From the IMG/VR virus record IMGVR_UViG_3300040801_004034, positions 1 to 64,000 of that record: a stretch of 64,000 nucleotides of DNA. One strand, given 5' to 3'. How positions within the stretch are numbered: position 1 is the first letter of the stretch; every line of letters starts with the position of its first letter. The notes under the pieces are model-generated. The model was given only the letters and a program-made list of their open reading frames with translations. It was not told the origin of the DNA and did no database searches. Position numbers and translations under genes: made by a program. Shown in pieces: positions 20,004 through 61,030 of the stretch.

Positions 20004-21314
20004 ATGCCAACACATACTACAACACAAGATTTAGACACAAACTCACCACAAATCGATGGTGCTACAGCTACAAAAGGTTCATTCGGGGTAGCACCGGATG
20101 GTACACGTTATGTTAAAAATGGGCCAGCTGATACTGATTGGGAGGTTGCTGGTACAGGAAGCGATGGAGATGCTACTAACCTTGATCCCTTATTGTTACG
20201 TCAAGCACAGTTAGCACAAGAATACATTGATGGTCAATATACAACAAGTGAAATTAAAACTATCCCGTTTACACCTTCTGTAGCAGGTGATCCGAATAAT
20301 CAGTTTCGTTGCGGTGTTTATGATATCATTAAAGAGCGTATTATATTTATACCAACAAACGGTGAAAAATTTAATATTATAGATCAAAATACTAACACAA
20401 CCACACAATCTACATTCGGTTTAGATCTTACTACACCTAATTGGATATCTGTTTGCTTAGGAAATGATGGTAAAGCATATGCTACACCTGACGCTGATAA
20501 CATTACCGGATTTCTCATTATTGATTTAGAAAACGATACAGCTACTGAATCAAGATTTGGTTTACCGCTTTCAGCTTTCGAAGAAAATGAATTTGGTAAA
20601 GTACAATGGCTTGGAATTTGCAACGGTGGTAATGGAAAGTTGTATGCAATGCCATTTAACAGTAATTTTGTATGCATTATTGATACAGAAACACAGACTG
20701 CTGAGCTTAAAGATTATGGTCTCGATTTTGTTGGAAATGGATCATATAGAGGTTGTATTACAGGTCTTGATGGTAGAATTTACGGCACACCGCTAAATTC
20801 TACTTCGGTCCTTATTATAGATCCGGTAACTGACACAGCTACGCAAACCGATTTCGGTATTGATATGAACGATCAACAATGGAATTATGCTGGTACTGGT
20901 CCTGATGGTAAAATTTACTGCTTACCATATAGAGCAGAAGGTGTATTAATAATTGATCCAGCTACTGATACAGCAATAGTAAAAGACTATGGTGCTGATT
21001 GGGCGGTAAGACGACCAGCATATAGAGGAGCTTCTACAGGTGTTGACGGTAGAATTTACGGTTTTCCATATAGAGGTATACGTGAAATTGCTATTCTTGA
21101 TCCTGTTGCAGACACACTCGAATTCACAACAGCTGGTATAGATTTTGATAACGGTGGTACTAATGGTAGCTCCCTTCGTTATGATGGTGGCGTTATTGCT
21201 TCAAACGGTAATTTATACCCTGTAATGGCAAAAGGTGAGGTACAACTTGTTATAGAAAATAACTTAATTAAAAGTTTCCCAAGAGCATGGACACCACCAT
21301 ATAATAACAATTAA
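20004..21314 (+). CDS. beta-propeller protein, putative receptor-binding or decoration protein
   Basis: Six to seven repeats of GxDG[KR]IYxxP…ILIIDPxTDTA. Confidence 0.65.
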   Translation: MPTHTTTQDLDTNSPQIDGATATKGSFGVAPDGTRYVKNGPADTDWEVAGTGSDGDATNLDPLLLRQAQLAQEYIDGQYTTSEIKTIPFTPSVAGDPNNQFRCGVYDIIKERIIFIPTNGEKFNIIDQNTNTTTQSTFGLDLTTPNWISVCLGNDGKAYATPDADNITGFLIIDLENDTATESRFGLPLSAFEENEFGKVQWLGICNGGNGKLYAMPFNSNFVCIIDTETQTAELKDYGLDFVGNGSYRGCITGLDGRIYGTPLNSTSVLIIDPVTDTATQTDFGIDMNDQQWNYAGTGPDGKIYCLPYRAEGVLIIDPATDTAIVKDYGADWAVRRPAYRGASTGVDGRIYGFPYRGIREIAILDPVADTLEFTTAGIDFDNGGTNGSSLRYDGGVIASNGNLYPVMAKGEVQLVIENNLIKSFPRAWTPPYNNN

Positions 21315-22045
21315 TATATTTCTTCTAGTTTTACAAAACAAGCAAACGCATTAATTTCTTTGTCCATAACAATTGCATCTTTGTATAAATGCTCACTTAT
21401 ACATAAGATATAACGTTTGCTCTGTTCATCGCTAAGATCTTCACACTTGTAAACATGTTCCAAGTAACCTCTCATCAAGGCATGATAATCACCTTGGAAC
21501 TCGCTGTCATTCTCAATCAAATACTTTCTAAGCTTAAGAGATTTCTTACCTGTAATACATTCATGCATGAATGAGTATATGTTATTGAGATTGGTCAACG
21601 TTTGAATATCTAACTTACCATCAACACAATTTTTCTGTACTTCGTTAATGATCTTACGTATATCTGGAAAGTTATTTTTGATAAGCTTACCAAGCTTTGA
21701 TTTCTGCTCACCACTAACGGTAATACCTTCAGCTGATAAGATATGAGCAACCCTCTTAAGAACATCACCAATATCAGCTGTAAAGTCGAATGACTGTGTT
21801 CTACTCTGAAGGGCTGGAATGATCTTGTGCTTGTAATTAGCTGTAAGTATAAACCTGGTTACCTCACTATACTCTTCAATTGTATTTCGTAGGGCTTTTT
21901 GGCCATCTTTTGAGAGCCCGTCACAATTACTCGTTAATACTTTTTTATTTCCAACAAAGAAATTATGTGTTTCATCAACTGAAAGGTCATAAACTTTCTT
22001 CTTTATACCAATTTTTGTTATTTTTTTAATCTTTAATTTTTGCAT
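21311..22045 (-). CDS. gp44: clamp loader large subunit gp44, C-terminal half preceded by a 40-aa split-intein C fragment
   Basis: VYDLSVDETHNFFVGNKKVLTSN|CDGLSKDGQKALRNTIEEY…FILTAN…ALQSR…FPDIRKIIN. Confidence 0.92.
   Translation of the reverse strand: MQKLKIKKITKIGIKKKVYDLSVDETHNFFVGNKKVLTSNCDGLSKDGQKALRNTIEEYSEVTRFILTANYKHKIIPALQSRTQSFDFTADIGDVLKRVAHILSAEGITVSGEQKSKLGKLIKNNFPDIRKIINEVQKNCVDGKLDIQTLTNLNNIYSFMHECITGKKSLKLRKYLIENDSEFQGDYHALMRGYLEHVYKCEDLSDEQSKRYILCISEHLYKDAIVMDKEINAFACFVKLEEIY
21926..22045 (-). mobile_element. split intein C fragment (40 aa, ends T-S-N; +1 Cys)
   Basis: Intein blocks F/G: VYDLSV…HNF…SN|C. Confidence 0.9.
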
Positions 22046-22970
22046 ATGCCTTTCTCATCATTTTAAGTTGTAATAAATTATCATCTTCAAATTTTGTTTC
22101 GTCAATATATTGTATAATATTTTCTTCATTAATCCATTTAAATGACATTTCATTCTGATCACAATATTCTTGCAATGCTGTCATTTTGTCTATTTCTATA
22201 TTATATCTATTTTTCGGTTTAATTTCATACATTGTACGGGTTTCCGGATCATAAAAATCTGAAATGTATGTTTTGACATCTGTTTTGACTCGTATCGTTT
22301 CATACTCACAATGTTGGTTACATAACCAAAAGCATGCTTCCCACGAACTTCTAAATTTTTTAGTTGTTTCCCCAATTACTATTTTTGCATCCCAGTGTGT
22401 CCATGTATTAGTAATGTTTGGTGTGTATTCACCTGATGCGATTTTCCGTTTCATGGTTCGTGACATTTTCTTTGAACACATCTTTTTATGTTGTTTACCT
22501 TCTTCAGTTTCGTAGAATTTTTTCATACGTTTTGATTTTTTATTCCGCTGAGCTATACCTGCATCTGTCTTATTATATTGTTTAAGTGTTTTACGTATTT
22601 TTTCTATTTCAGATTCAGTTTTTGTGTAATCTCTTAGTTTTGTCCACACACGTTGTTTAATTTCTGATGGCGTATATTTTTTCCAACCGGTCCAACCTTT
22701 AAATGTTCCTGAATAAGAAAAACTATCTTCTGTTAACAAAATTCCAGAATATAAGCTATAGTGCGGTTCTTCGAGTAAAAACAAAAAATGATTAACACTG
22801 GGTTTATCCATCCAGTATACCAAGTTAGTAAACCACAACTTATGTGTATCATATACCTTTTTTGTTACAGGATTATAATAACGTACCTGTTTTTGTTTAT
22901 AATCTTGTACCAAATGTTTTATTGACTCTTTTGAATATGATTTTCTATTCGTTCGATTGCCACCTCTCAT
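22026..22970 (-). mobile_element. free-standing homing endonuclease (NUMOD3-like repeats plus TnsA-like PD-(D/E)XK domain) between the gp44 halves
   Basis: FRSSWE…YE…YISDFY…YEIKP; start placed at ATG 22970, 5 nt after TAAATA. Confidence 0.8.
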
Positions 22971-22974
22971 ATAA

Positions 22975-23316
22975 TTATTTATGACATTCAACAGTAATAC
23001 TATCAACCTTTGTTAAAATTGTATCTATTCCTTTTGAGATCATATCATCTAATTTCATCCTTTCAATCTCACCGTCTTCATTTTCAACATACCATTTATG
23101 ACTACCAGTACATATTATTTTTTCATCATTTTCAAATTCAAGTTCGTAACAATCTTGTTCACCCATGTAAAAATGGCTAAATGGTCTATACTCTATTCTG
23201 TCTTTTATTTGATTATATGACATTACAAGATCATTATCATGATCAAGATCTTTAATAGGTTGAGTACATTTTTTACCATCTCTCAATACATGGACTGGTG
23301 TATTCTCATCAAGACA
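22975..23316 (-). mobile_element. split intein N fragment (113 aa)
   Basis: Block A CLDENT and block B CTGSHKW, followed by a stop codon. Confidence 0.9.
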
Positions 23317-23625
23317 TTCATCAAGCACAATGATCTTCAAATTTTTATCAAACGATTTCGTCTGTGCAAATCCTACAACTTTACTTCTGATAGTATCAAT
23401 ACCGTTTTCGTCAGATGCATTGATATACATATAATCACATTGCAACTTACTAATGATGATTTTCGCAAGCGTTGTTTTACCAATACCTGGTGTACCACAA
23501 AATAACATATGCGGTATTTCAGATGTTATATTTTCAAAATACTTACGATTTTGATTTGACAACACTAAGTCGTCTAATGTTTGAGGTCTGTAACGTTCTG
23601 TCCACAATTGATTAAATTTATCCAT
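22975..23625 (-). CDS. gp44: clamp loader large subunit gp44, N-terminal half followed by a 113-aa split-intein N fragment
   Basis: WTERYRP, GTPGIGKTT, INASDENGID, IIVLDE|CLDENT…IICTGSHKW. Confidence 0.92.
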   Translation of the reverse strand: MDKFNQLWTERYRPQTLDDLVLSNQNRKYFENITSEIPHMLFCGTPGIGKTTLAKIIISKLQCDYMYINASDENGIDTIRSKVVGFAQTKSFDKNLKIIVLDECLDENTPVHVLRDGKKCTQPIKDLDHDNDLVMSYNQIKDRIEYRPFSHFYMGEQDCYELEFENDEKIICTGSHKWYVENEDGEIERMKLDDMISKGIDTILTKVDSITVECHK

Positions 23626-23631
23626 ATTGAT

Positions 23632-23659
23632 ATTATAGTTTATGTTTATGGTTGTTCAA
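23632..23659 (-). promoter_or_regulatory. early promoter TTGAAC-N16-TATAAT, 6 nt before ATG
   Basis: Read directly from the sequence. Confidence 0.75.
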
Positions 23660-23675
23660 TAGATTAAATATTTTT

Positions 23676-23912
23676 ATGTACAAAACAGAACTCGAACTAA
23701 TCAACGAAGCTTACTATAATAGATCAGAGCAGGAATCTGATGAAGTATCAACTCAATATGATGAAATGGTGCCAGTTTCAATGGAAGAAGTGGTACATTA
23801 CTACATCGAAATGGTATCAGATGTTGCCGGAGACGGTCGTGAAGCGACCGAGCTTCGCAAGTTTGCCAATTTCGTTGATAACAATAGTTACGAAATCAGA
23901 GCAAGCGGTTAA
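23676..23912 (+). CDS. small acidic late protein (LINEAYY motif)
   Basis: Start placed at ATG 23676, 5 nt after TAAATA. Confidence 0.6.
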   Translation: MYKTELELINEAYYNRSEQESDEVSTQYDEMVPVSMEEVVHYYIEMVSDVAGDGREATELRKFANFVDNNSYEIRASG

Positions 23913-24154
23913 ATCTTTTTATCTTTGTTTACAGAGAGATTATATGTCCTCAAAACCCATCCAATGGTATAAGCAACGTGCACAGGTGTTGTATACCAAT
24001 ACTCTGTAAGAACAAGCATCATGTACCAAAATGGTTGACTAACCCAACCGAGCACAACACCTATAATCTTCCACTTACGTTGCTCGCTCATAGAGCAAAT
24101 AAATGCAGCAGGACCAAAGATGCCGATACCGAGTTGTGCAATTAAATCAAGCAT
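23909..24154 (-). CDS. small membrane protein
   Basis: 81 aa with two to three hydrophobic segments; coupled to dut by a TGATG overlap. Confidence 0.6.
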   Translation of the reverse strand: MLDLIAQLGIGIFGPAAFICSMSEQRKWKIIGVVLGWVSQPFWYMMLVLTEYWYTTPVHVAYTIGWVLRTYNLSVNKDKKI

Positions 24155-24642
24155 CAGCGACCGCTTGATCCGAAACCGTGTGCGCCTCGTTCTGCCGGGG
24201 TAATTTGATCAGCCCATTCAACTGTTGTTACATAGTTCTTTTCAATCTTAATTTGCGCAACTTTATCACCTTTCTTATAGTGATATGGTATACCTGTCAG
24301 ATTGTATATTTTTACACCAAGATCAGACCTGTAGCCGGTGTCGATTTCCCCGAAGTGTGGTTGAATACCATGTTTAAACCCTAAACCAGACTTTGGTTTA
24401 ATAACAAATCCAAACCCTGGTGTAATGTTACCGACTGTAATACCTGTAGGTACAACAGCGTGCCCGACATCTACACCACCGGTTGTATCAACTTTACTAC
24501 GTGGTATTGTAGTATCCTCTACAGCAAACAGATCGTAACAATTATCATCATGATGGGCCTTTTCAGGTAATTTAGCATCATCATGGGTTTTTACAAATTC
24601 GATTTTACAATCAATACGCTGGATGTTATTTTCTTCATTCAT
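24154..24642 (-). CDS. dut: trimeric dUTPase
   Basis: YDLFA, PKSGLG, GEIDTGYRS, GDKVAQ, RGAHGFGSSG. Confidence 0.95.
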   Translation of the reverse strand: MNEENNIQRIDCKIEFVKTHDDAKLPEKAHHDDNCYDLFAVEDTTIPRSKVDTTGGVDVGHAVVPTGITVGNITPGFGFVIKPKSGLGFKHGIQPHFGEIDTGYRSDLGVKIYNLTGIPYHYKKGDKVAQIKIEKNYVTTVEWADQITPAERGAHGFGSSGR

Positions 24643-24648
24643 ACACCT

Positions 24649-24676
24649 ATTATACAGTATGTGTTTGGTTTATCAA
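24649..24676 (-). promoter_or_regulatory. early promoter TTGATA-N16-TATAAT, 6 nt before ATG
   Basis: Read directly from the sequence. Confidence 0.75.
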
Positions 24677-24697
24677 GATATCGACTAAATATAATAA

Positions 24698-27586: not shown

Positions 27587-27588
27587 TG

Positions 27589-27951: not shown

Positions 27952-27954
27952 ATG

Positions 27955-30970: not shown

Positions 30971-30990
30971 ACATATATTTATACGCTAAG

Positions 30991-34825: not shown

Positions 34826-37219
34826 TTATGATGTACCGTTTATGATTTCATCAAAATTAGCACCTGTCTGGGTTGCCAAGAAGTTGACTAAGATAAATTC
34901 AGCTGCTCGAACTGGCTTGATATAAATATCAATCACTAGTTCATTCTGATCAATAACATCATTTGTGTTGTTACGTTCATCACAAATGATTCGGTAATCG
35001 TAAACACCTTCAGTATTCTTAGTAAGTTTGAAGATTGGATCAAGTACGTTGACAACTCGTGTTCGTGTAATCAATGTATTCGGTTCGAACACAAAGTACT
35101 TAGCTGTACGTCTTGTTGCCTTTTCTAACCATAAGAATAATCTACGAACATTAATTCTATCAAATGCACTTGGTTTTGCTTGCATTGTCTTCTGACCGAA
35201 TGTTACAAAACCTTCTCCTGGGAAGAATGCAACCGGGTTAACAGAAATTTTGTATAACTGATCACGTTGCTTCTGTTTAGGGTAGATTGCTAGATCATTA
35301 ACACCTGAAACTAGACCTCTTGTGAAACCTGCTGGTGCATACCAAGGCTGGAAGTTATCATCTGTGTTAGCCATCATAGCTGCCATTGTACCTGACATCG
35401 GTGCCCAGAACTGATCGTCTAGAACACTGTCATAAACCTTACCCCAGTTACCATATGTAGCTGCATAGCTTGTGTTAATTAAACTCATTACAGCTTGGAT
35501 TGGTTTAAGAACGTTTAATGAGAAGTTCTTTGATTTATCTTCAAGAGTCAAGAAATTGCTTCCTTGAACGAAGAACTGTCTTGGAAGATCACCAATGAAC
35601 ATATGATCTTTACGACGTTTTTCAGCAAAATCTGAGAAGCGTTGAAAGATCGTATTGTAATCTGCTCTGAAGGCTTTAGCTTCGTTTGAAATCTCAAGAA
35701 TATTAGATTTGTAGAACCCATCAATAGCACCAACTGCCATTGTATCGTCGAAATATTTCGTACCTGTTGTACGCTCTGTATATTCTGCTGTCGCGTTAAT
35801 AGTGGTAAGACCACCATCAACAGTGAGATCGATATCAAACATATCAATGTTTTCAACACTATCGAATAATCTATCAAGCTTGCGTGGAATAGAACCGAGT
35901 TTCTTTGTCTTAGGATTTGCTTCAGCATATGCACCGAGAGCATAGAGATTATCTGCTGCACCTAATGTTGCTGTTGCTTCAATATAAACATCCTTGATTG
36001 TCTCAGCTTGAGCTGATGTTGTTGCACCTAATGAACTGCTCAATGATACGATATTTGTATTAGCTGCAGATACATTAGCGAAACGAGATGATGTGAAACG
36101 CACCTTCTTCGTTGGCACTCCATTAATATCTAACCATGTGCTACCATTTTTGCTATTAACATATTCATTTGTCATCACAACAACATTCGGTGATGCATTT
36201 TCTCGTGTTTCAATTGAATAGCTGATTGCTGGACCACCATTTTGGTTGTTGATTTGTCTATGTGTATCAAATGAACCAACATATGTTTCTGAAATATTGT
36301 ATGCAAGCTTAATTGTATCAGAGGTGAATGGTGATTGGCTTAATTTAACAACACCGAGCGTTACTGTATCATCAAACTGATTCGATGAAATATCAAACAG
36401 GCTCACATTCTCCATAACTTCAGATATGCTATCATCACTTGAATCAAATGTATTAACTGTTGTTGCAGTATTATCAGAGATTGCTGATAGTGCGAAGTCA
36501 AGTCTTGAACTTGGAAGTGATGTGTATGCTGTTGTAAAGCCTGCTGATTGTGTAACAGTCTTAACACTGAGAATACCATCGAAATCTGTCGCAGGGTTTA
36601 GATTTGTGTTATCAATAGCACCAATATAAAAACCTTGAAACTTCTGATCAATTGTAGTCTGCCCTTTGTTAAGTACAATCATTGCTGCACCGCTTAAGTC
36701 TTGAACGCTATTGAATGATGTTTTCGGTGTATTTCCCCACTGGAAGTATTGAGGATTTTTACCAAGAATACCATAATATTCATCACGTGTAAGTTCAACG
36801 TGTGTTGGTTCACCAAGAATGTATGTCACATCTGTTGATTGTTCATCATACTCAGTAAGTGCTGTACCGAAGTTACTTGATAGTGTACTAACCGCACTAC
36901 ATGGATATGCAAGAGCACCATAATTGCTACCAAAACCAGCTCCTGTATCTTCACCGTATGGTAAGCGATATGTTAAAATATTTGCTGGTGAGTTGAAAAG
37001 TGGTCGAACTGAGTGATAAAAATATCTTTCAGCTGGTGTAGATGGTCTACCGTAAATTTGTTCAAATTCACTCTGGCTTGTAACTTGTATAACCTCATCA
37101 GTTGGCCCTTTAGATGCGAAACCTGGGATTAAAACGTTGGTGCCTGTTGGTAGATTTGCTCTAAGGGATAAATCAATCTCTCTCACCTCGACTCCGGGGC
37201 TCTGTATTTGTCTGCTCAT
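34826..37219 (-). CDS. gp18: tail sheath protein gp18
   Basis: SPGVEVREIDL, PWYAPAGFTRG, SAFDRINVRRLF, FEPN, CDERNN, IKPVRAAEFI. Confidence 0.97.
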   Translation of the reverse strand: MSRQIQSPGVEVREIDLSLRANLPTGTNVLIPGFASKGPTDEVIQVTSQSEFEQIYGRPSTPAERYFYHSVRPLFNSPANILTYRLPYGEDTGAGFGSNYGALAYPCSAVSTLSSNFGTALTEYDEQSTDVTYILGEPTHVELTRDEYYGILGKNPQYFQWGNTPKTSFNSVQDLSGAAMIVLNKGQTTIDQKFQGFYIGAIDNTNLNPATDFDGILSVKTVTQSAGFTTAYTSLPSSRLDFALSAISDNTATTVNTFDSSDDSISEVMENVSLFDISSNQFDDTVTLGVVKLSQSPFTSDTIKLAYNISETYVGSFDTHRQINNQNGGPAISYSIETRENASPNVVVMTNEYVNSKNGSTWLDINGVPTKKVRFTSSRFANVSAANTNIVSLSSSLGATTSAQAETIKDVYIEATATLGAADNLYALGAYAEANPKTKKLGSIPRKLDRLFDSVENIDMFDIDLTVDGGLTTINATAEYTERTTGTKYFDDTMAVGAIDGFYKSNILEISNEAKAFRADYNTIFQRFSDFAEKRRKDHMFIGDLPRQFFVQGSNFLTLEDKSKNFSLNVLKPIQAVMSLINTSYAATYGNWGKVYDSVLDDQFWAPMSGTMAAMMANTDDNFQPWYAPAGFTRGLVSGVNDLAIYPKQKQRDQLYKISVNPVAFFPGEGFVTFGQKTMQAKPSAFDRINVRRLFLWLEKATRRTAKYFVFEPNTLITRTRVVNVLDPIFKLTKNTEGVYDYRIICDERNNTNDVIDQNELVIDIYIKPVRAAEFILVNFLATQTGANFDEIINGTS

Positions 37220-37274
37220 ATACTATTATTTATATATTGCGGGATATTTTATTAGTACATGCTTAAATAATTTT

Positions 37275-38054
37275 ATGACACCAGGTAACGAAATTAACGA
37301 CATACCATATTATGGGTATATTTATATGTGGACGGATATTAAACGACAAATGTTCTATATAGGTTCTCATAAAGGCAGCTTTTATGATAGTTATAAAGCT
37401 AGCAATACAAGATTAAAACATGCTATTAGAAAGAGACCAGATACATTCACTGTAAGAGTTATAGAATATGTATGTTGTAATGACCGTCATGAGCTTCATA
37501 AGGTTGAAGAAAAATGGCTTAAATTTTATAATGTCGATGCAAATTATGCTTTCTATAATCATAAAAAAACAGCAAGTGGTGGATCAGGACCATCATCAAG
37601 AAAAGGTTTAACACATAAACAATTTTACGGTGATGATTACATCGATCCAAGAAAGGGTAAAACATTAGAACAAATTTATGGTGATGAAGCTACTGTTGTA
37701 AGGAACCGTTTATCTAAAACATTGCAAGATTATTATATCAAACATGGGCATGGTATCAAAAAAGGCATAACACATGACGGTGTTGATCCTCGTAAAGGTA
37801 AAACATTAGAAGAAATTTATGGTTACAAAAAATATGCAAATCCTCCTAAACCATTTAAGATCATGATATCAATACCTGGTCAGAATAGTGTATATGAAAC
37901 ATTCGAGTCCGAACGAGATTTTTTCAAACGTACATTGTTTGAAGCTACCACACTCGATAAAATTAAAAAAGATAAACGACATACTGTTAAGCGTAGATTA
38001 CCATCAACGAAACATAAATACCCTGTCGGTACTACGTTTTTGTTGTATCCTTAA
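37275..38054 (+). mobile_element. GIY-YIG (Seg-like) free-standing homing endonuclease
   Basis: GYIY…FYIGSH…R…E…FYN; two DPRKGKTLE[Q/E]IYG repeats; start 5 nt after TAAATA; antisense to its neighbours. Confidence 0.85.
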
Positions 38055-38674
38055 ATTAGTTCAATATATAGCTGCGAAAATGCAAACTCAAAAGATGAAT
38101 ACAATTCCGCAGAGTCGTCGTTATCATATGTGTATTCAATTGCACCAACAGATACAGGGAATGCATCTTTGTAAATAAATTTTACAACATTCTTATTATA
38201 TTCATCAATACCATAAACTGTAAATGTCGTCTGGTATTGTTGCGGTGGTGTTGCAGATCGTTTAATTTTACCAACCGTCGGTTTTTGTACGTTTGCAACA
38301 TTATCAGCATCATATACAGAATCTTTCATATCATTCAACAATGATAGCCATCTTTGTAACAACCAATAATTATAATATCTATTATCAACAGGAAATTGTA
38401 CAGTCACATTTTCGTACGGCTCTCTTGTATGTAATGATACCTTCATACTCTGACCAGCATATTTTAAAGTTTCAGAATTTACTTTTGTACTTGGCACTAT
38501 CGTACCCTTAATTGATAGCTGTAGCGAATCAGTTATAATTTCACCTTTATCACTCGTACCAAAATTTTTAGTATTGATATCTCTTAAAGCATCTGGTATA
38601 TCGATAACAAGTCTAAACTTGTCTGTACGTGCTTGGTTAAGCGTTGATTGAATTATCTCCCCCATTGTGTCCAC
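38051..38674 (-). CDS. tail tube terminator/completion protein (gp3-like, tube fold)
   Basis: VQFPVDNRYYNYWLLQRW…FIYKDAFPVSVGAIEY. Confidence 0.6.
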   Translation of the reverse strand: MDTMGEIIQSTLNQARTDKFRLVIDIPDALRDINTKNFGTSDKGEIITDSLQLSIKGTIVPSTKVNSETLKYAGQSMKVSLHTREPYENVTVQFPVDNRYYNYWLLQRWLSLLNDMKDSVYDADNVANVQKPTVGKIKRSATPPQQYQTTFTVYGIDEYNKNVVKFIYKDAFPVSVGAIEYTYDNDDSAELYSSFEFAFSQLYIELI

Positions 38675-39858
38675 CCTTGTTGTTCTAACATTGCCATATC
38701 ATCATCTTGCGACATACCATTATTTATAAGAGCTGGCATCACATCATAATGTTCTTCATTTTCATTACTCATATAACCACCTGGTCTCATAAACTCTTTG
38801 ATACCATAATCATGCTCTTCAAGTAGAAGTGGTTTGTTTGCCTCGTCTCTCTCAACCACTGTAAAATATTGTTCAATCACATCATCTATAAGAATGATTA
38901 AATTCCACATCAATCCAGCAACACGGTCATCGTAAAATCCTGATTTAGCTTGCCATTTCCCGTTCTTACCCTTTGTGAATGTTTTAAGTTCATTGATTAA
39001 ATGAATGTCACGGATACTTACAGCACGTACATTAGTGACCCAATGTCTCATGTTTGTTACACCAATATGTTTTGTGTTAGTATGACTAATTATACCATTT
39101 TGTATTGATTTACGTTTTGCTTTACTGGCGCCCCACGATACTATTTTTTCATAGTTGTGAACATTTTTAAGACCATCAACGACCTGTGCACCACTATTAT
39201 TACGTTCGACACAGACTAAAGGCATTCCCCAGTTTTGTAATATCTCATGTACTTTTTCAACAAAATTATACGGTGCTATTTCATTGTTATGATAACAAGC
39301 AACCTGTTTAATTTCTGTAAGATCTGTATAATCAAAAATTTGCACCACACTAGCATCACGCCCTATACCTTCACTTGTATCAACACTTGCAACATAGATT
39401 TTCTCATCACTTGGTTCTTCCCATATCTTATAATGGCCGTTATCATAAACATATTTTGGTTCATATGTGTTCGATTTCAAAAACTCGAACATTTCCTCAT
39501 TAATAGTCTGATCTGATGAATCAATCCACACACAATTATGGCTATACATATCATTTGTATAATATGCTTTAGTACCATCAACATTTACGATATCGTAAAC
39601 AACACGATCACCACATGGGTGTTTCGAAATAACTTTCTGTAAACCACTTAAGGTTTCCACACCTGTACCTAGTAGTATATCGTTAACTCGTTCAAAACCG
39701 TATTCCGTTTTCAACATATGGTCATACGATGCAGTTAGACTATATACACCACAGTTAATTGATATACATGGTTTTGTTTGCTTAGATATACCATAGAATG
39801 TTTTATATCCTTCTTCAGTCAATACTTTCGTATTGTTAATATTTTTAATGAATTCCAT
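38653..39858 (-). CDS. gp17: terminase large subunit gp17, C-terminal nuclease half preceded by a 108-aa split-intein C fragment
   Basis: VYDIVNV…YSHN|CVWIDSS…VDTSEGIGRD…CVERN…ELKTF…YDDRV. Confidence 0.92.
   Translation of the reverse strand: MEFIKNINNTKVLTEEGYKTFYGISKQTKPCISINCGVYSLTASYDHMLKTEYGFERVNDILLGTGVETLSGLQKVISKHPCGDRVVYDIVNVDGTKAYYTNDMYSHNCVWIDSSDQTINEEMFEFLKSNTYEPKYVYDNGHYKIWEEPSDEKIYVASVDTSEGIGRDASVVQIFDYTDLTEIKQVACYHNNEIAPYNFVEKVHEILQNWGMPLVCVERNNSGAQVVDGLKNVHNYEKIVSWGASKAKRKSIQNGIISHTNTKHIGVTNMRHWVTNVRAVSIRDIHLINELKTFTKGKNGKWQAKSGFYDDRVAGLMWNLIILIDDVIEQYFTVVERDEANKPLLLEEHDYGIKEFMRPGGYMSNENEEHYDVMPALINNGMSQDDDMAMLEQQGWTQWGR
39535..39858 (-). mobile_element. atypical split intein C fragment (108 aa, carries block B and blocks F/G)
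   Basis: KVLTEEG, TASYDH, VYD…SHN|C. Confidence 0.88.
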
Positions 39859-40721
39859 CTTTAGTAATATTTAGGTCGTTAATAGGAGTAATACGATCAT
39901 CATATATGATAACGAAATTACAGTTCAGTTCTTCCTGTATATCCTGTTGTCTCATATGGTCCTTTTTCATTTGACCTGGTGTAAGATGATATGGCTCATA
40001 CACCTCAAAAACAGTGTTCGTTTTATGACAATAACCGTCTGGAAAATAAGAGAGTACTCTAAAATTTCTATCTATTTTAATATTTTGATGTTGTTCATAA
40101 TAATCTAATATATCAGATTCTCTGTATCCTTTATTGATGAATGATGTTATACCTCTCTGTCGTTTTATATTTTGACATTTTTTACCATTTTGTTTATATT
40201 GTGAATTCCATGCGACGATGATATTCAAGATAATGTTTCCTCCAATCGTTCCCGTATGTATACATGAAATGTTCTCGTTTGTTTGGCATTATTCTGCACT
40301 TACCGCAGTATGCTTTTTCTTTAAATTGCTGTGTAGCAGCGTCCCATGTAATTTTCGAACCGCATTTACAATAGTATTTTCTCGGTATATCACCACCACA
40401 AAAACCTAATATAAACAAATGCGCAGAAAAACTCTTCGTTTTGAGTTTATCATGATATTCTATACCGTAATGTTGCACGCTTTTGAATAATGAAATATCA
40501 TCCTTTTGCATTTTTCTATTACCAGATTTACCGAGATATTTTTTCCAATTATCATCTTCTGATAGCATACTAATAGTTTTTTGCTTACTATATAATTGTG
40601 CTTGTTCTAATCGGTTTTTTTGTGTTGTATACCAATTTGTTGTTATTTCACTCTGGTTTTCATTTGCTTTCGCACTGTAGTCTTTCGTAAAGTTCTTCGA
40701 TTGTTTGGGTATATTGTTCAT
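39845..40721 (-). pseudogene. homing endonuclease between the terminase halves, broken into two overlapping frames (40194..40721 and 39845..40228)
   Basis: 5' ORF has CKCG…YCGKC zinc motifs; 3' ORF has a Vsr/PD-(D/E)XK-like YFPDGY…EVYEPYH…KD motif; 35-nt overlap. Confidence 0.65.
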
Positions 40722-40761
40722 TTTTATTACTTAATCGAACAAGAGTGTTTCCAGCGCAACA
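40660..40761 (-). mobile_element. atypically short split intein N fragment (33 aa)
   Basis: CCAGNTLVRL…TIEELYERL then stop; block A only. Confidence 0.88.
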
Positions 40762-41562
40762 ACCAAATTCTTGATCAAACGCTTCTTCACTATCCATACT
40801 AGCTTTTGTAAGCTTTACCCATGCATCATCTCTACCAGGTACTTCATTCCAAAGCACCTTATCACATGCCCAACCATTTGTGTTGTTTTCTGCACCAGTG
40901 AAAAGCTTGTAAAATAAGTTGTCAGTACCATTTGCAGTAGATGCTATAAAAATCTTAGATTTCTTAGAAGATGAAATAACAGGGTATACAGATGACCAGA
41001 ACGGCTTCATAATATGTGGTTCAACGAAAGCCATTTCGTCAATAATAAGAGTACCAACTGCTTGACCACGAGCTGCAGTACCTGTTGTTGTCGAAATATT
41101 AATCTGACTACCATTACTCAATTCAACTGATGTCTTACCATAAGCAACAACACCAGGCTTTAACCAGTTTGGCAATTCTTCGTATGCAAGTCTAACACGA
41201 CCGAGAATTTCAATAGCTGTATCCTCTTTATTTGCTACAATAAGAATACGTTGGTCTTTTTGAAAGCAAGCCACCCATAAAGCGTATATTGTAAAGAGTG
41301 TTGTTTTACCAATCTGTCTAGATGCTAATAATATAAAGAAACGATTTTTGACCATCTTCCTAAGAACCCGGTCCTGAAATTTATGAAGCGTGATAGGTTT
41401 TCTACCTTCGTCAACATTAATAATAGTAAAAAACTTTGAGAAAAAATGAATATCATTTTTTGCTTTAATCAGATCACGCATCATCTCTGGTGTATAATCG
41501 TGTTCAGCTCTCGCGGTAGGCAAATTAGGATTATTTTTGTATGACTGTGTATTTTGCGACAT
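40660..41562 (-). CDS. gp17: terminase large subunit gp17, N-terminal ATPase half followed by a 33-aa split-intein N fragment
   Basis: SRQIGKTT, ARG, IIDEMAF, ASTANG, WNEVPGRD, QEFG|CCAGNTLV…. Confidence 0.93.
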   Translation of the reverse strand: MSQNTQSYKNNPNLPTARAEHDYTPEMMRDLIKAKNDIHFFSKFFTIINVDEGRKPITLHKFQDRVLRKMVKNRFFILLASRQIGKTTLFTIYALWVACFQKDQRILIVANKEDTAIEILGRVRLAYEELPNWLKPGVVAYGKTSVELSNGSQINISTTTGTAARGQAVGTLIIDEMAFVEPHIMKPFWSSVYPVISSSKKSKIFIASTANGTDNLFYKLFTGAENNTNGWACDKVLWNEVPGRDDAWVKLTKASMDSEEAFDQEFGCCAGNTLVRLSNKNEQYTQTIEELYERLQCESK

Positions 41563-42494: not shown

Positions 42495-42508
42495 GTATAA
42501 ATATAGTT

Positions 42509-53482: not shown

Positions 53483-53490
53483 ATAACACA

Positions 53491-53813: not shown

Positions 53814-53853
53814 CGTATAATAGTATTTATACAATACTAAAAATTATTTGACT

Positions 53854-54210: not shown

Positions 54211-54211
54211 A

Positions 54212-56255: not shown

Positions 56256-56261
56256 AAATCT

Positions 56262-56289
56262 ATTATAAATACTAGGTCGCTGAAATCAA
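56262..56289 (-). promoter_or_regulatory. early promoter TTGATT-N16-TATAAT, 6 nt before ATG
   Basis: Read directly from the sequence. Confidence 0.75.
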
Positions 56290-56904
56290 TACAGCCTTGA
56301 CCTTTTCTACTATTTGTTTTGTTTTTCTACTTGAATAATATTTTGCTCGTATGTAGTTAATACGTGTAAAACATTCACTAAATTCTTGAAGTTCATTGTA
56401 CGAAAATTTTGATAAAACCTTCTCAACCGGAAATGCGAATAATGAGAAGAAATTTATTTTTCGTTGTTTTATATGTTTGAAAAATGCAGGGTATATTGCT
56501 TGTGGTTCAACGTGTGTTATATAATGTTTAATCGATATACCTTGCTCTTTACAATAATTACTGATAAACATAAAACTGTCTCTTACCTTTTCTGTTGTCA
56601 TATCACTATCAGGTTCGTTTAAAAGATATCGATCGTTGTATAATGTATATGTTCGAATTGCTCGTTGAGTCGTATAGAAATCCAACTCAACATATTTTTT
56701 TGTTTGAACAAAAAACGGAGCTTCAAAAAAAGACGTCATATCAACATCAGGGAATTTGAAAAACAGGTCATCAAGCCTTTTGAGTGCTAATTTAACAGTA
56801 TCATCAAGTTTAGTGAAATCTTTACGAGCTTTAAACGGTTTATCGTTTACTCTTTGAAGAACATAAAGGTATGTGTTATATATCTGTTGTTGTTTTAAGT
56901 CCAT
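56272..56904 (-). CDS. possible helicase loader (gp59-like)
   Basis: 210 aa, helical, immediately upstream of gp32 as in T4; assignment rests mainly on synteny. Confidence 0.4.
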   Translation of the reverse strand: MDLKQQQIYNTYLYVLQRVNDKPFKARKDFTKLDDTVKLALKRLDDLFFKFPDVDMTSFFEAPFFVQTKKYVELDFYTTQRAIRTYTLYNDRYLLNEPDSDMTTEKVRDSFMFISNYCKEQGISIKHYITHVEPQAIYPAFFKHIKQRKINFFSLFAFPVEKVLSKFSYNELQEFSECFTRINYIRAKYYSSRKTKQIVEKVKAVLISAT

Positions 56905-57178
56905 CTAACCCGCTAAATTTATTGAGATATTTTGTTACGTATTTACTCTTTGATACTGATGGTTCTGTGTGTATGAATTTTCTGATTGCTTCAAAATCGT
57001 TAGGTTCATCTATTTGCTGTTTATAAATGTCTCTAATCGTTTTATTTTCAAGTATCTTTAGAAACACCGTAGCAAAATTCATCTTTTTATCATATGTTAA
57101 AGATACGAATGAACAAAATGAGTAAAATGAATGATGAAACTCGTCTGTTTCAATATTGGTATATGGAATATATGACAT
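56876..57178 (-). CDS. hypothetical protein
   Basis: Coupled ORF in the replication operon. Confidence 0.6.
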   Translation of the reverse strand: MSYIPYTNIETDEFHHSFYSFCSFVSLTYDKKMNFATVFLKILENKTIRDIYKQQIDEPNDFEAIRKFIHTEPSVSKSKYVTKYLNKFSGLDGLKTTTDI

Positions 57179-58056
57179 TATAAAAGTTTGAGTGTTTTTG
57201 TTAGGTTCATCACGTTTTCATTTAATGCTACACCGGCAGCACATTCGTGACCACCACCTTGTCCTAATTTTTCCGCAAGCTCTCCCATATGTAATTTACA
57301 TTCGTTTGTGCTTCTTAGATATGCTTTCTTCATTTTAGGATTGATTATAAGTATAAAGTCGTATCCGTATTTTTCAAGCATTCTACCTGCTATTTCATTA
57401 GGCCATTTTTCTGCACAGCAGCTTAACATCTTAAACTGTTTATCACCAATAGGTATTTGTGTACCATACATTTTTGTCTGTACTATTATCTGATTGATTT
57501 CATTATGAATAATATGAAGCGCATTTTTATGAAATTTATTAAAGCCGACAAAACCTGTACCGAAATCATCAATAAATTTACCAAGTTTATCACCAGTATA
57601 CCCCCAGTAAATAAAATCTAAATCTTTACTAAACGGAAACTTAAGTGTGTAACTATCGTAATCATCGATTAGTGCAAATAGTGTTACCATTGGTTTTGAA
57701 AGCTTATCTTTAATTTTAAAAACATCACAAATTAGCTTTGTACAAGACGTTTCCATCTTCACAACTTGTTTAGCTATTTTCCAAACATGACTATTCTCAA
57801 CATGTTGTTCATGATGATCAATAACTACCACGTTTGGGTAGTCGCAAATATATGCATAATCATAAATCGGTAAATCACAAATAAACACTTTTGAATATTG
57901 TGAAAAATCAAATTGATCAAAATCCTTCTTGAAACTTTTAACAGTGGTAACCTTATAAACAACTTTATATGTATCTGCTGGCATAGCTTCACGGATTGCA
58001 AGGAATGACCCAGCTCCATCTAAATCTGCATCGACTATGACTAAAATCTTTTTCAT
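57178..58056 (-). CDS. DHH/DHHA1 phosphoesterase
   Basis: DADLDG, ICD, IDHH, DDYD, GGGHECAAG. Confidence 0.9.
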   Translation of the reverse strand: MKKILVIVDADLDGAGSFLAIREAMPADTYKVVYKVTTVKSFKKDFDQFDFSQYSKVFICDLPIYDYAYICDYPNVVVIDHHEQHVENSHVWKIAKQVVKMETSCTKLICDVFKIKDKLSKPMVTLFALIDDYDSYTLKFPFSKDLDFIYWGYTGDKLGKFIDDFGTGFVGFNKFHKNALHIIHNEINQIIVQTKMYGTQIPIGDKQFKMLSCCAEKWPNEIAGRMLEKYGYDFILIINPKMKKAYLRSTNECKLHMGELAEKLGQGGGHECAAGVALNENVMNLTKTLKLL

Positions 58057-58090
58057 TGTAAATAGTTATTTAATAATAGGTTCCTTCAGT

Positions 58091-58477
58091 TCAACTCATT
58101 CTACCTAGTTCATCCGAAACGTCATCAATATCGTTTCTTCTTGCAGCAAGATTATCATCCTCTTCAATCCAAAGCGTGTCATAATTGATTCTCATTGCAT
58201 TACTACCGAAATTCGGTCCGAATCTATTTTTAACTGAACCTATGTTGATAATACCTAGTTCTTTATCTTCAGGAGATTGAAAAATATTGTAAATAGCATC
58301 ACAAGTAGCAGCAAGACCGTATGATTCACTGATTGTATCAAGCCCTGGTGAATTTTGACCATATCCACTATTATGTGTTAGAATTCCATTTGCAAAAAAT
58401 AAATTATCATCCGATACAGATATATCTACTGTTTCAATTTCACCTATTTCTTGTATTTCTACTATTTCATCAACCAT
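58091..58477 (-). CDS. gp41: replicative helicase gp41, C-terminal part preceded by a 36-aa split-intein C fragment
   Basis: TVDISVSDDNLFFANGILTHN|SGYG…SESYGLAATCD…KNRFG; start placed at ATG 58477. Confidence 0.9.
   Translation of the reverse strand: MVDEIVEIQEIGEIETVDISVSDDNLFFANGILTHNSGYGQNSPGLDTISESYGLAATCDAIYNIFQSPEDKELGIINIGSVKNRFGPNFGSNAMRINYDTLWIEEDDNLAARRNDIDDVSDELGRMS
58370..58477 (-). mobile_element. split intein C fragment (gp41-1-like, 36 aa; +1 Ser)
   Basis: Blocks F/G ending THN|S. Confidence 0.9.
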
Positions 58478-59660
58478 AAAGGTGTTGTTTACATTTTTCA
58501 ATTGTTTCATCAGGTTTTTCATTATAATCTTTCTCCCATATTACCAGAACATCAAATCCTAGATTTTTTATTATAGCTTGTTTTTCTGCATCTTCAATCC
58601 AAATTTGCTCACATGTAAGATCATTATAAGGATTAGGTTTATCAGTGTTACGGTAAATATCAGGGTTACCATGGAATACATCACCATTAAATTCAATAAC
58701 TTTTTTTCTATCAACATTTACATAATCATAAAAGAAGCTTCGTTTTTTATGTTGTTTATGAAATTCTTTGTTTTTGATCGCATAATATGTATTTTCAGTG
58801 TTACTATCAATCAACTCAAATAGTTGTTGTGATATTTTTGAGAAACCAGAGACCCCTATAGCGCTGTGTGTACACCAGTGTAAATATTTTCTTTCACCGA
58901 GTTCAATACCGTATTTACTAATATAAAAATCTTTTGTATTCCTAAATCTGCATAGTTCTATATGTTTTTCATATTTTTCAGCGCCTTCTTTTTCACCATA
59001 CTTCCTTTTAAAAGACTGCAGCGATTTATGATCTTTAGCTTGTTTCATTTTTTTCGGACCATCTATAACACCATATTTTTTAATAAACCCTTCTTTTGAA
59101 CTACCGAAATGTAGTTTCATTATTTTTTCGTTGTATAATATTACACCTTCATCTTCTCCGTATTTTTGTATATAACTCTCTAACGTATGTTTTTTCTTTT
59201 CCTTTTCTCTCATCAATCTGAATCTTTTACGACCATCAGCATCACCGTATTTTTTTACAAATCGTTCAATCGTTTTATTACCTTTATTATTTTCACACTT
59301 TTCAGCAAATTTCTCACGTCCTTTTATTTCCCCATATAATTTAACATAATTATCAATAGTATGTGCTTTTTTATTACACGCTTGTTCATACCGTTTTTTA
59401 CCTTCCTTTTCTCCAAACTTTAATATACAACCTTCTAGTGTTGATGCAGATTTATACATTTTATTATATTTTTCTATCTTTTTAAGACGATCTAGCCACG
59501 GAAACGGTATATCATACTCGCAAAATCTTGCTAACTGAACCATTTGCATGATAGATAGTTTTTCATAAACATCTTCAATAATTTGTATTTGTTTCTGCTG
59601 TTGCAGGTCAGGGGTTTTATTACAATGTTTTTTCCAGTTTTTTGACTTGTAGTATACCAT
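58470..59660 (-). mobile_element. free-standing Vsr/DUF559-like homing endonuclease between the gp41 halves
   Basis: About seven KYGExEG repeats; FYD…VIEFNGDVFHGNP…VLVIWEKDY; ATG 59660 lies 6 nt after TAAATA. Confidence 0.85.
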
Positions 59661-59695
59661 AAACATTATTTATGACTGCTACACAGATTAACATG

Positions 59696-59965
59696 CTATT
59701 TCTCAGTAAAAAGTTTATCACCTACCTCTAAACCAGTATTGATTGATTTTACAAGCTGATTGGATACTGGAAACATATGTTTACCGCTACAAATAATTTC
59801 TTTACCAGACTTTAACTTTATTTTATAACATTTTTGCGTTTCTACAGGATAAACATATCTCACATCAACATATTTTTTTGACCCTAATATTTTATCTCCT
59901 ATTTTTAAATCAACAATGCGTTTATTACCATTTGGTGTTTTCACCACAGTATTGATATCCAAGCA
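59696..59965 (-). mobile_element. split intein N fragment (gp41-1-like, 89 aa)
   Basis: Block A CLDINT.V.TP.G and block B IICSGKHMFP, followed by a stop codon. Confidence 0.9.
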
Positions 59966-61030
59966 TCTGTTAATCTGAGATGCTGTGATTATAGGGCAAC
60001 TAAAAATGTATGACAAGGCTCGAACCTTTTCAGACACACCTTTAATACGTTCATAAAGCTGACTATTTTCATTACCTTTAATCAAATTCAAATAGTCAAG
60101 AACGATTGCATCAAATTTAAACCCTGAACTTTGTACTGATTTTAAATAACCCTGCAATCCTTCTACAGTAACAGTGTTAGGTGGAAATTCTTTTACAACA
60201 ATTGACCCTTGTTTTGGTTGACCTTCTTGCTCATTCATCATGTGCTTGAGTGTTACTGTTTGAGACTTAAGTTCTCGTACAGGTATTTTCGTTAATCCTG
60301 ATACGAGTCGTCTACCATACATCATTTCAGCCATTTCAAATGATATCAGTAGTACGTTTTTACCGGATGCTGCTATATTACATGCAACATTACCAAGAAC
60401 AATACTCTTACCAATATTAGTCTCACCGACGAACATGTATAATGAACGACCATTTTGTAAAAAGCCGCCATCTAAACTATTATTCAACCAATCCCACCCA
60501 GTAGTAATTGTCGGTTCATCGACATTCAAATCATCGATTAAACGATCAATATCTTTAAAGAGATCAAGACCAATATCAGTAGTAAGGTCAACATTACAAC
60601 TCCTCTCGAAACTATCTAAAATATAAGCTGTATCAATATTACCTTGTGAAAAATCCTCTGCAACACTCAACATTGTATTGTAAATTGCACGTTCTTTAAT
60701 AAAACGCTCAGTATTACTTACCAATTCATCTTTATCAAGAACACGATCAAAGTCTTTTACTTCCTTGATTATGTTTTTGAAGTTTTCTTTGAGAGTATCG
60801 TTAACCAAGAACGATTTAATCTCTGTTATGGTCGGTATTTTCTGTCGACGTTCATAGAACGTTTTAATAACAGTAAAAACATTTTTGATATCTTTGTTCT
60901 TAAAATGACTTGGGTCTACAAAAGGTATTACTTGTGTTAAGTATTGCTCATCGAACAGGCATTGATGTATTAAAATCTTCTCAAAAAAATCTGTATCTAG
61001 TCTTTGTTTTTCCATTTGTTTAGAAACCAT
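59696..61030 (-). CDS. gp41: replicative helicase gp41 (DnaB-like), N-terminal part followed by an 89-aa split-intein N fragment
   Basis: TTGW, GETNIGKS, SFEMAE, KEFPP, LDYLNLI, TASQINR|CLDINT…ICSGKHMF. Confidence 0.93.
   Translation of the reverse strand: MVSKQMEKQRLDTDFFEKILIHQCLFDEQYLTQVIPFVDPSHFKNKDIKNVFTVIKTFYERRQKIPTITEIKSFLVNDTLKENFKNIIKEVKDFDRVLDKDELVSNTERFIKERAIYNTMLSVAEDFSQGNIDTAYILDSFERSCNVDLTTDIGLDLFKDIDRLIDDLNVDEPTITTGWDWLNNSLDGGFLQNGRSLYMFVGETNIGKSIVLGNVACNIAASGKNVLLISFEMAEMMYGRRLVSGLTKIPVRELKSQTVTLKHMMNEQEGQPKQGSIVVKEFPPNTVTVEGLQGYLKSVQSSGFKFDAIVLDYLNLIKGNENSQLYERIKGVSEKVRALSYIFSCPIITASQINRCLDINTVVKTPNGNKRIVDLKIGDKILGSKKYVDVRYVYPVETQKCYKIKLKSGKEIICSGKHMFPVSNQLVKSINTGLEVGDKLFTEK

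Follow-up and report, generated by a model that had tools for sequence, protein, structure and literature searches.

The DNA considered here, called the window below, has a G+C content of about 34%. It is a stretch of 64,000 bp (positions 1–64000) of the 221,292-bp contig IMGVR_UViG_3300040801_004034, which comes from an uncultured T4-like myovirus. Three genes in the window, those for the clamp loader large subunit (gp44), the large terminase subunit (TerL, gp17) and the DnaB-like helicase (gp41), are each broken in two by a split intein and one or two nuclease open reading frames (ORFs). The explanation that we consider quite probable for the whole arrangement is that each protein is rebuilt by split-intein trans-splicing and that the three intein pairs are orthogonal. 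Genes of this kind, consisting of host gene halves, a split intein and a free-standing homing endonuclease gene, were called fractured genes by Dassa et al. in 2009 (PMC2677866).

The Three Fractured Genes

All three loci lie on the minus strand and share one layout, as follows. The upstream piece encodes the N-terminal part of the host protein (the N-extein) followed by the N-terminal intein half (IntN) and a stop codon. The nuclease ORF or ORFs come next. The downstream piece encodes the C-terminal intein half (IntC) followed by the rest of the host protein (the C-extein). Matches in Pfam, PHROGs and the PDB assign both sides of each break to the host family, that is, clamp loader, T4-type terminase and DnaB-like helicase. 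This layout, including the overlap of the nuclease ORFs with the downstream half, is identical to that of the fractured genes of Dassa et al. at all three loci.

The original prediction, made from the sequence alone, had placed split-intein half-genes at these three places, and we find them there on the minus strand. Its spliced lengths, recomputed from the sequence, agree exactly, and the motifs that it expected to be rejoined are rejoined. The gp44 product would have 307 residues with IIVLDE|CDGL restored, the TerL product 560 residues with QEFG|CVWIDS, and the gp41 product 447 residues with SQINR|SGYG; these lengths fit those of the intein-less relatives, which are 315–320, 561–564 and 445–446 residues, respectively. 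The expectation of a single out-of-frame endonuclease gene at each locus holds for gp44 and gp41 but not for TerL, where two overlapping ORFs represent a frameshifted gene.

The intein segments show the hallmarks of class 1 inteins at all three loci: Cys1 (in CLDENT, CCAGNT and CLDINT), a (T/S)xxH motif, a terminal Asn, and Cys or Ser at position +1. Block B reads CTGSH in gp44, CSGKH in gp41 and SYDH in TerL, where it lies in the C half, so that Ser takes the place of Thr in TerL and gp41. Block G is canonical in TerL (SHN|C) and gp41 (THN|S). Profile searches with the halves gave a divided result. All matches to Pfam Intein_splicing were under the gathering score, but the gp41-1 intein structure, the consensus intein CatC and profile–profile comparison did yield matches, which are given below with each locus.

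The original prediction had named assembly error in the stop codons as a finding that would undo it, and this is not borne out. A second IMG/VR assembly matches the gp44 locus at 100% identity over 8.6 kb. One further assembly covers the whole TerL locus with its broken nuclease gene, and another covers the part up to window position 40668, both at 100% identity. For gp41, the locus is 100% identical in a Joint Genome Institute (JGI) contig of sample 3300040769, and in an independent Logan assembly of SRR7428126 one base differs in 10.7 kb (99.99%). The matching IMG/VR assemblies are 3300040780_000016 and 3300040769_000035. The layout also recurs in divergent relatives. One with 74% identity has gp44 pieces of 215, 315 and 242 residues with order and synteny kept, and fractured TerL and gp41 homologues are found at 40–53% identity. 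With the loci 99.99–100% identical in at least three other assemblies and the layout recurring in relatives with only 45–75% identity, the stops are real features of the genome and neither chance nor assembly errors.

The gp44 Locus

The gp44 N piece (positions 22975–23625) encodes 216 residues (…IIVLDE|CLDENT…VECHK-stop), and the C piece (21311–22045) encodes 244 residues (MQKL…VLTSN|CDGL…). The N-extein (23317–23625, 103 residues) ends at the Walker B motif, …IIVLDE; it matches Pfam AAA and, through residues 5–104, the clamp loader family PHROG 168. IntN (22975–23316) has 113 residues (CLDENT…CTGSHKWYV…VECHK) and is followed by a TAA stop. IntC (21926–22045) has 40 residues (MQKLKIKK…VYDLSVDETHNFFVGNKKVLTSN). 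The C-extein (21311–21925, 204 residues) starts with CDGLSK, thus with Cys+1, and matches Pfam Gp44_lid and DNA_pol3_delta2 and positions 99–307 of PHROG 168. The profile of the gp44 family aligns with T4 gp44 and with the small subunits of RFC up to position 107–108.

More than 120 clustered proteins of 203–230 residues align with the gp44 N piece over its full length, at 47–74% identity, and their stop is at the identical place. Cys1 and the CTxxH block (T173, H176) are invariant in 36 homologues. Matches to Pfam Intein_splicing are under the cutoff for IntN (E-value 2e-4) and under the gathering score for IntC (positions 122–150 of 155, E-value 8e-5). The N-piece profile aligns with that of the gp41 N piece with an E-value of 3.3e-5 in hhalign, and Cys1 and the xxH block line up in this alignment. 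A search of the PDB with IntN alone gave two matches, both inteins and neither significant. Block G is TSN|C (positions 21926–21931), with Ser replacing the penultimate His, and the relatives carry TSN or THN.

The clearest view of the fold comes from alleles in which the intein is contiguous. When the window gp44 halves are aligned to a contiguous mini-intein allele they flank a loop, with 45% (IntN) and 73% (IntC) of residues identical. A whole contiguous allele models as a clamp loader carrying an all-β insert. Because Foldseek with the whole allele returned clamp loaders only, the intein was modelled separately. The model of the contiguous mini-intein of the family has the HINT fold, with a predicted local distance difference test (pLDDT) score of 94.8. 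Its top 50 PDB matches comprise 43 inteins, six bacterial intein-like domains and the hedgehog Hint domain, with template modelling (TM) scores of 0.54–0.80. The gp44 intein family numbers 92 loci in IMG/VR, and these include contiguous, fractured and nuclease-free alleles. Two cultured phages, Pseudomonas phage pf16 and Synechococcus phage S-CAM3, came up in tblastn as candidate intein-bearing clamp loaders and were rejected: their annotated genes are ordinary, with 316 and 315 residues, and the tblastn coverage is therefore alignment drift.

The gp44 nuclease gene (22026–22970, in an ORF open to 23006) encodes 314 residues from the ATG at 22970, which is most likely the start, as in a homologue with 65% identity. 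Read from that ATG, the gene starts 4 nucleotides past the N-piece stop in a different frame and overlaps the start of the C piece by 20 nucleotides. The homologue lies at the same position in the related locus L007, and PHROG 15427, annotated as endonuclease, is matched with an E-value of 1e-12. In this family, the residues of an E..D..ExK motif are invariant, and 7 of 14 members match Pfam Tn7_TnsA-like_N (best E-value 5e-8). The gp44 nuclease thus belongs to a TnsA-like PD-(D/E)xK family. The nucleases of Dassa et al., in contrast, are Vsr-like or of the GIY-YIG type.

Inteins are known from other clamp loaders, namely cyanobacterial DnaX (PolIII γ/τ) and the archaeal RFC small subunit (Novikova et al. 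2016, PMC4760082). These inteins lie in the AAA+ ATPase domain, as does the gp44 intein, and the DnaX intein directly follows Walker B, likewise as in gp44. Among the structures that the gp44-family model resembles is that of the DnaX mini-intein, 7CFV. The DnaX and RFC inteins are contiguous and cellular, whereas the gp44 intein is borne by a phage and naturally split, and the likeness described here is one of site and fold.

The TerL Locus

The TerL N piece (40660–41562) encodes 300 residues (…DQEFG|CCAGNT…QCESK-stop), and the C piece (38653–39858) encodes 401 residues (MEFI…MYSHN|CVWIDS…). The N-extein (40762–41562, 267 residues) is the ATPase domain and ends with …AFDQEFG; it matches Pfam Terminase_6N (E-value 2e-14) and, in PHROGs, PHROG 5989 and the terminase large subunit family PHROG 2. 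IntN (40660–40761), read from the sequence, has 33 residues (CCAGNTLVRL…LYERLQCESK) followed by a stop. Its counterpart in the related locus L009 is CVTGNTLVRI…LYEELSEESQ. IntC (39535–39858) has 108 residues and contains block B (SYDH), block F (VYDIVNV) and block G (SHN). The C-extein (38653–39534, 293 residues) is the nuclease domain and starts with CVWIDS, with Cys+1. It matches the gp17 nuclease domain structures of RB49 and T4 (3C6A, 3CPE) and is 55–60% identical to the C-terminal part of intact TerL proteins of 561–564 residues.

The split of the TerL intein is atypical, at 33 and 108 residues, and block B falls in the C half. Over residues 3–109, IntC aligns with CatC (6DSL_B), which was engineered as a consensus of atypical inteins, with an E-value of 3.9e-5, and H47, H107, N108 and C109 are invariant in eight fractured homologues. 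A PDB search with a 40-residue TerL IntN query gave only spurious WD40 repeats. The known inteins AceL-TerL, GOS-TerL and Cat have IntN/IntC sizes of 25/104, 37/115 and 30/104 residues (PMC11766414). As in the window, AceL-TerL, GOS-TerL and Cat (6DSL) have large terminase hosts, a short IntN and a long IntC, and AceL-TerL also shares Cys1 and Cys+1. The window locus differs from AceL-TerL and GOS-TerL by its frameshifted nuclease gene, and the likeness described here is in split size, the place of block B and the match to CatC.

The TerL nuclease gene is in two parts. The 5′ part (40194–40721) is an ORF of 175 codons that overlaps the coding end of IntN by 62 nucleotides, and the 3′ part (39845–40228) is an ORF of 127 codons in another frame that overlaps the C-piece start by 14 nucleotides. 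The first is 48% identical to residues 1–165, and the second 62% identical to residues 173–283, of a single 289-residue ORF in L009; in relatives, both parts are in one frame. The 3′ part has a weak match to Pfam DUF7487 (E-value 2e-4). The frameshift lies near 40205–40220, within …catcgtcgcatgg… (window 40194–40228, minus strand). Since there is no homopolymer at the shift, and since both other assemblies covering the point show the identical shift (L096 spans the shift and L095 also covers it), the intervening element is probably a decayed homing endonuclease gene, a frameshifted copy of the 289-residue ORF.

In relatives, TerL is an intein hotspot (L009–L011, L103–L105, L153, L154, L167). 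Two more interruptions occur in the N-extein, after residues ~86 and ~172 in the numbering of the window protein, one of them with an insert that has a LAGLIDADG domain, and the TerL genes of some relatives have up to three insertions. In cultured Krischvirus coliphages, two coding sequences, of 583 and 459 residues, are annotated for TerL (L005, Escherichia phage kaaroe, MN850574, 16573–22751; also JK32, TB34, SAP, phiS and GoldenSnicker). A TnsA-like or endonuclease I-like domain stands at the end of the first, and the second starts with about 108 residues similar to the window TerL IntC. The Krischvirus break is elsewhere in the ATPase domain, at Terminase_6N profile position 106/107.

The gp41 Locus

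The gp41 N piece (59696–61030) encodes 444 residues (…SQINR|CLDINT…LFTEK-stop), and the C piece (58091–58522) encodes 143 residues (MKNL…ILTHN|SGYG…). The N-extein (59966–61030, 355 residues) matches Pfam DnaB_C and DnaB and ends with …ITASQINR. IntN (59696–59965) has 89 residues (CLDINTVV…ICSGKHMF…LFTEK) and a TAG stop. IntC (58370–58522) has 51 residues, ends with …LFFANGILTHN, and matches positions 106–155 of Pfam Intein_splicing with an E-value of 3e-3, under the gathering score. The C-extein (58091–58369, 92 residues) starts with SGYGQN, with Ser+1, and matches positions 508–586 of the DnaB-like helicase family PHROG 19. The N piece aligns with the T4 gp41 structures 8DUE and 8DTP up to residue 355 (E-value 3e-23), and residues 356–441, the IntN segment, align with the structure of the gp41-1 intein, 6QAZ (E-value 6.5e-15). 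C356 and H418 are invariant in 27 homologues. In gp41 of Shigella phage ESh36, the match extends through the intein region.

The original prediction had likened the loci to the gp41-1 and AceL-TerL fractured genes. The likeness in kind stands, as does the TerL class, but the gp41 insertion site is that of gp41-8. The gp41-1 intein (6QAZ/6RIZ) has the same host protein and is homologous over the whole of IntN, but it is inserted three residues downstream (SGY|SSS, versus NR|SGY here); as the insertion point differs, gp41-1 is not the same allele family by site. With gp41-8 (GOS Lake Gatun; PMC2677866, PMC7090010), the window gp41 shares both the host protein and the insertion point (LNR|SAY, versus INR|SGY here), so that, judging by the junction, the intein sits at the gp41-8 site and not at the gp41-1 site. 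The gp41-8 intein also has a canonical split of ~88 + 45–51 residues, Cys1, Ser+1 and a nuclease gene between the halves, as here. The last 11 residues of its IntC, LFFANGILTHN, are identical here (Pinto 2020, supplement), in a comparison of the junction and the IntC end only. The window allele, with an IntC of 51 residues, is different from gp41-8.

The gp41 nuclease gene (58470–59666) encodes 398 residues, starts 29 nucleotides past the N-piece stop and overlaps the start of the C piece by 53 nucleotides. It matches PHROG 22677 (E-value 2e-39), and a homologue with 42% identity lies at the same position in the related loci L175 and L176. The last 40 residues have weak Vsr-like matches, to DUF559 (E-value 2e-3) and REase_MTES_1575 (E-value 5e-4), both under the cutoff.

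The Nuclease Genes and Their Upstream Sequences

Free-standing in their own frames between the halves, the nuclease genes fit a predicted homing endonuclease role. BLASTP gave no kinship among the three nucleases, and those of gp41 and gp44 had no sequence match in the PDB.

A 12-mer, GTCATAAATAAT, has two exact copies in the window, at 22974–22985 and 59665–59676 (minus strand), where 0.06 are expected; none of 100 shuffled sequences reaches two. Both copies directly precede the start codons of the unrelated gp44 and gp41 nuclease genes. Within the 12-mer is a T4 late-promoter-like box, CATAAATA, which is thus directly before these two ATGs, and the TerL nuclease gene has no such box. Only a mild enrichment of ATAAATA close to the N-piece stop is seen in relatives, at 5 of 50 loci against a background of 2%. 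In the fractured genes of Dassa et al. (2009, PMC2677866), the endonuclease start is closely preceded by an RNA hairpin that contains a late-promoter-like TATAAATA element. Upstream of the window nuclease genes such hairpins are not significant: those predicted are no better than in shuffled sequence (z of −0.06 to 0.83).

Similar boxes occur elsewhere in the window. TATAAATA boxes lie 5–8 nucleotides upstream of structural-gene ATGs at 30976–30983 and 37227–37234 (minus strand) and at 42496–42503 (plus strand). Most starts inspected are preceded by A/T-rich sequence and not by a Shine–Dalgarno motif. The late mRNAs may have very short leaders or none, or the host may have Shine–Dalgarno-independent initiation.

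Conservation and the Allele Series

For gp44, identity to the nearest fractured relative is 71% for the N-extein, 77% for IntN, 70% for IntC and 57% for the C-extein; for gp41, the same segments give 47%, 57%, 66% and 46%. The conservation of the intein halves thus equals or exceeds that of most extein segments, a pattern that points to purifying selection on the halves.

Intact alleles were sought in relatives, as the original prediction had advised, and both intein-less TerL and gp41 genes and alleles with contiguous inteins exist. For gp44, IMG/VR holds nine contiguous alleles, about 60 fractured alleles with the same nuclease family, and five that are split with little or nothing between the halves. 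The nine contiguous alleles have mini-inteins of 144–166 residues within clamp loaders of 451–479 residues. TerL alleles are contiguous (L101, L103–105), fractured, or split without a nuclease (L152), and gp41 alleles are fractured or split without a nuclease (L012, L190, L195/197). The relatives with the nuclease lost resemble gp41-7 of Dassa et al. The nearest extein relatives of the window TerL and gp41, at 55–60% identity, are intein-less, and several contigs have both genes intact.

Proposed Trans-Splicing and Orthogonality

We propose the following course of events. A mini-intein would have invaded each gene, in gp44 after Walker B, in gp17 between the ATPase and nuclease halves, and in gp41 at the SQxNR motif. 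A free-standing homing endonuclease gene would then have inserted in the loop of each intein and broken it, as in the route to broken genes described by Dassa et al. (2009). Translation of each gene would now yield two polypeptides, whose intein halves would associate, fold into a HINT domain, excise themselves and join the exteins by a peptide bond, giving products of the normal lengths of 307, 560 and 447 residues. The three reactions would run side by side in one infected cell, with each N half pairing only with its own C half.

Exclusive pairing is to be expected because the inteins are unrelated in sequence, charge pattern and split topology. Pairwise identity among the three is 22–35%. 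The net charges of IntN/IntC are −12/+7 for gp44, +8/−6 for gp41 and −1/−1 for TerL; the polarity is therefore reversed between gp44 and gp41, and their non-cognate N/C combinations would carry like charges. The known inteins gp41-1, gp41-8, NrdJ-1 and IMPDH-1 do not cross-react (PMC7090010, PMC11168065). We thus infer both trans-splicing and orthogonality, and consider the two well supported by the sequence comparisons.

Several points weigh against this proposal. Splicing, the requirement for it and the absence of cross-reaction are all inferred from sequence. Every Pfam Intein_splicing match is under the gathering score. The gp44 intein has Ser and not His before the terminal Asn (LTSN|C), and the TerL and gp41 inteins have Ser for Thr in block B; both kinds of variant also exist in relatives. 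TerL IntC is less conserved than the C-extein in comparison with L009 (39% versus 55%). Residual cross-reaction occurs mostly with atypically split inteins that have one short-peptide half (Pinto et al., PMC7090010), and such cross-talk could apply to the TerL IntN of 33 residues. Lastly, the contig was inspected to ~93.6 kb of its 221 kb, and intact paralogues may lie in the remaining ~128 kb.

Alternative Explanations

The most durable of the alternatives, improbable as we judge it, is that the halves act without covalent joining, the intein halves or added tails serving as docking domains, as in the fragmented NrdA of phage Aeh1, whose gene is reportedly split by an inserted endonuclease gene and whose fragments reportedly work without being ligated. 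The want of a penultimate His in the gp44 intein and the Ser in block B of two inteins would suit such a role. Intein-free fragmented phage genes with products that associate non-covalently are, moreover, documented (PMC3045599; SbcD-like locus of Dassa et al. 2009). Against docking, Cys1, the block B His, the terminal Asn and the +1 Cys or Ser are invariant in dozens of homologues at 45–75% identity, and invariance of catalytic residues is not expected where the role is binding only. The breaks also fall inside Walker B and SQxNR, where an appendage of about 150 residues would probably disturb catalysis, and the close published relatives gp41-8 and AceL/GOS-TerL do splice.

Slightly less probable still is that the three genes are dead, in a decaying or defective phage, or that intact copies from another part of the 221-kb genome stand in for them. 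One of the three nuclease genes is indeed frameshifted, and an intact copy that rescues the phage is possible in the ~128 kb beyond the inspected part. The original prediction had named such copies as evidence against it. A six-frame search found no second copy of any extein part in positions 1–64000 and 9.9 kb beyond, that is, in 73.8 kb of the 221-kb contig, and to this extent the expectation stands. Every extein motif and every catalytic residue of the inteins is intact, and the halves appear to be under purifying selection. Genomes with ~100% identity come from several samples, which suggests a replicating population, and gp43, UvsX, gp46, gp47 and gp32, near the loci, are single and intact, and a UvsW-like helicase is whole.

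That the stops are assembly or sequencing errors, and that the true genes have contiguous inteins with nested endonuclease domains, is essentially refuted. In its favour, the window was assembled from a metagenome, and bifunctional inteins that have an endonuclease nested inside are in general the commoner arrangement. Against it, separate assemblies agree down to one base in 10.7 kb for Logan, the nuclease ORFs have start codons of their own, run in different frames and reach into the downstream pieces, and the stop positions and frames repeat in relatives at 45–75% identity, the >120 gp44 N pieces of 203–230 residues among them.

Genome Context and Scope of the Scans

The T4-type genes of the window are those for the clamp loader, terminase, tail sheath, tail tube, DnaB-like helicase, gp32 and dUTPase. 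Past the window end are genes for a B-family DNA polymerase, UvsX, gp46 and gp47; gp43 is one intact ORF of 864 codons. The nearest phage isolates have less than 60% protein identity by tblastn against 50,697 phage records, and a megablast search of the gp44 locus against the same number of records gave no match. The contig was walked past the window to ~93.6 kb of its 221 kb, and no further fractured gene was evident along it to that point.

The TerL scan covers the best 80 of 175 loci. The gp41 profile scan was built on extein motifs, and the source contig itself is not among the matches listed; a DNA pattern for FANGILTHN found at least 120 loci and is non-specific. Among the matches listed (for TerL, the best 80 of 175), the source contig is the only one shared by two lists of fractured genes, which makes a weak census of multi-locus genomes.

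Some neighbouring features may be recorded. A tandem repeat with a 60-bp period lies at ~19088–19276 (self-match of 88% identity at a 60-bp offset), upstream of a plus-strand ORF of 436 codons (20004–21314) with repeated …DG.IY..P…L/VIID… units. Between the tail sheath and tail tube genes, on the opposite strand to them, is a plus-strand ORF of 305 codons (37137–38054); in translation, it resembles a free-standing GIY-YIG nuclease (…YGYIYMW…FYIGS…) and has a repeated PRKGKTLE(E/Q)IYG motif. Many free-standing nuclease genes lie at ~64–93.6 kb of the contig (L255, L257, L258), including two SegE-type GIY-YIG ORFs of 223 and 134 residues. There are also an I-HmuI/NUMOD-like ORF (277 residues) and a DUF7487 ORF (279 residues, E-value 7e-35) adjoining gp46 and gp47.

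Significance

Fractured genes for gp41 and terminase have been known since 2009 (PMC2677866), and the gp41-8 (PMC7090010) and AceL-TerL (PMC11766414) intein classes serve as tools. The fractured gp41 and TerL genes described here are thus of published kinds, and all three families are common in metagenomes. New here are the split clamp-loader intein family and the presence of three such loci in one genome. The hosts listed by Dassa et al. are gp41, IMPDH, DnaE, NrdA, NrdJ, ligase, terminase and a protein of unknown function, with no clamp loader among them (PMC2677866); their contigs were short, and therefore several loci per genome could not show there. A full-text literature search, with most subscription papers outside its reach, found no split intein in a phage clamp loader, and the clamp-loader inteins surveyed by Novikova et al. 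are those of cyanobacterial DnaX and archaeal RFC only. A broken replication gene in a large phage is known from Pseudomonas phage MIJ3, in which a split intein interrupts PolB and its two halves flank an HNH endonuclease gene (PMC6892783). That case and the Aes123 PolB1 split intein (PDB 9HTH) differ from ours in the host protein, gp43 being intact in the source phage.

On balance, we are inclined to regard the gp44 genes as a large, apparently undescribed family of split clamp-loader inteins with a TnsA-like nuclease, in which all stages of gene breaking are extant, and to regard the gp44 intein together with the gp41-8-like and AceL-TerL-like inteins as a natural triple that co-evolved for one cell. 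Contiguous, fractured and nuclease-free gp44 alleles occur at the same site, and the route from intein to split intein is therefore testable by comparison and experiment.

Split inteins serve to ligate and label proteins and to build logic circuits, and there is demand for orthogonal sets. The three pairs of the source phage would have to coexist without cross-reaction in one infected cell, and the triple includes a charge-reversed pair (−12/+7 versus +8/−6) and a member whose split is atypical. Should all three prove active and mutually orthogonal, they would provide a ready-made, co-evolved orthogonal set and a direct comparative test of the origin of split inteins. For the phage itself, splicing as proposed here would mean that a T4-like phage tolerates having its replication and packaging hang on three post-translational ligations.

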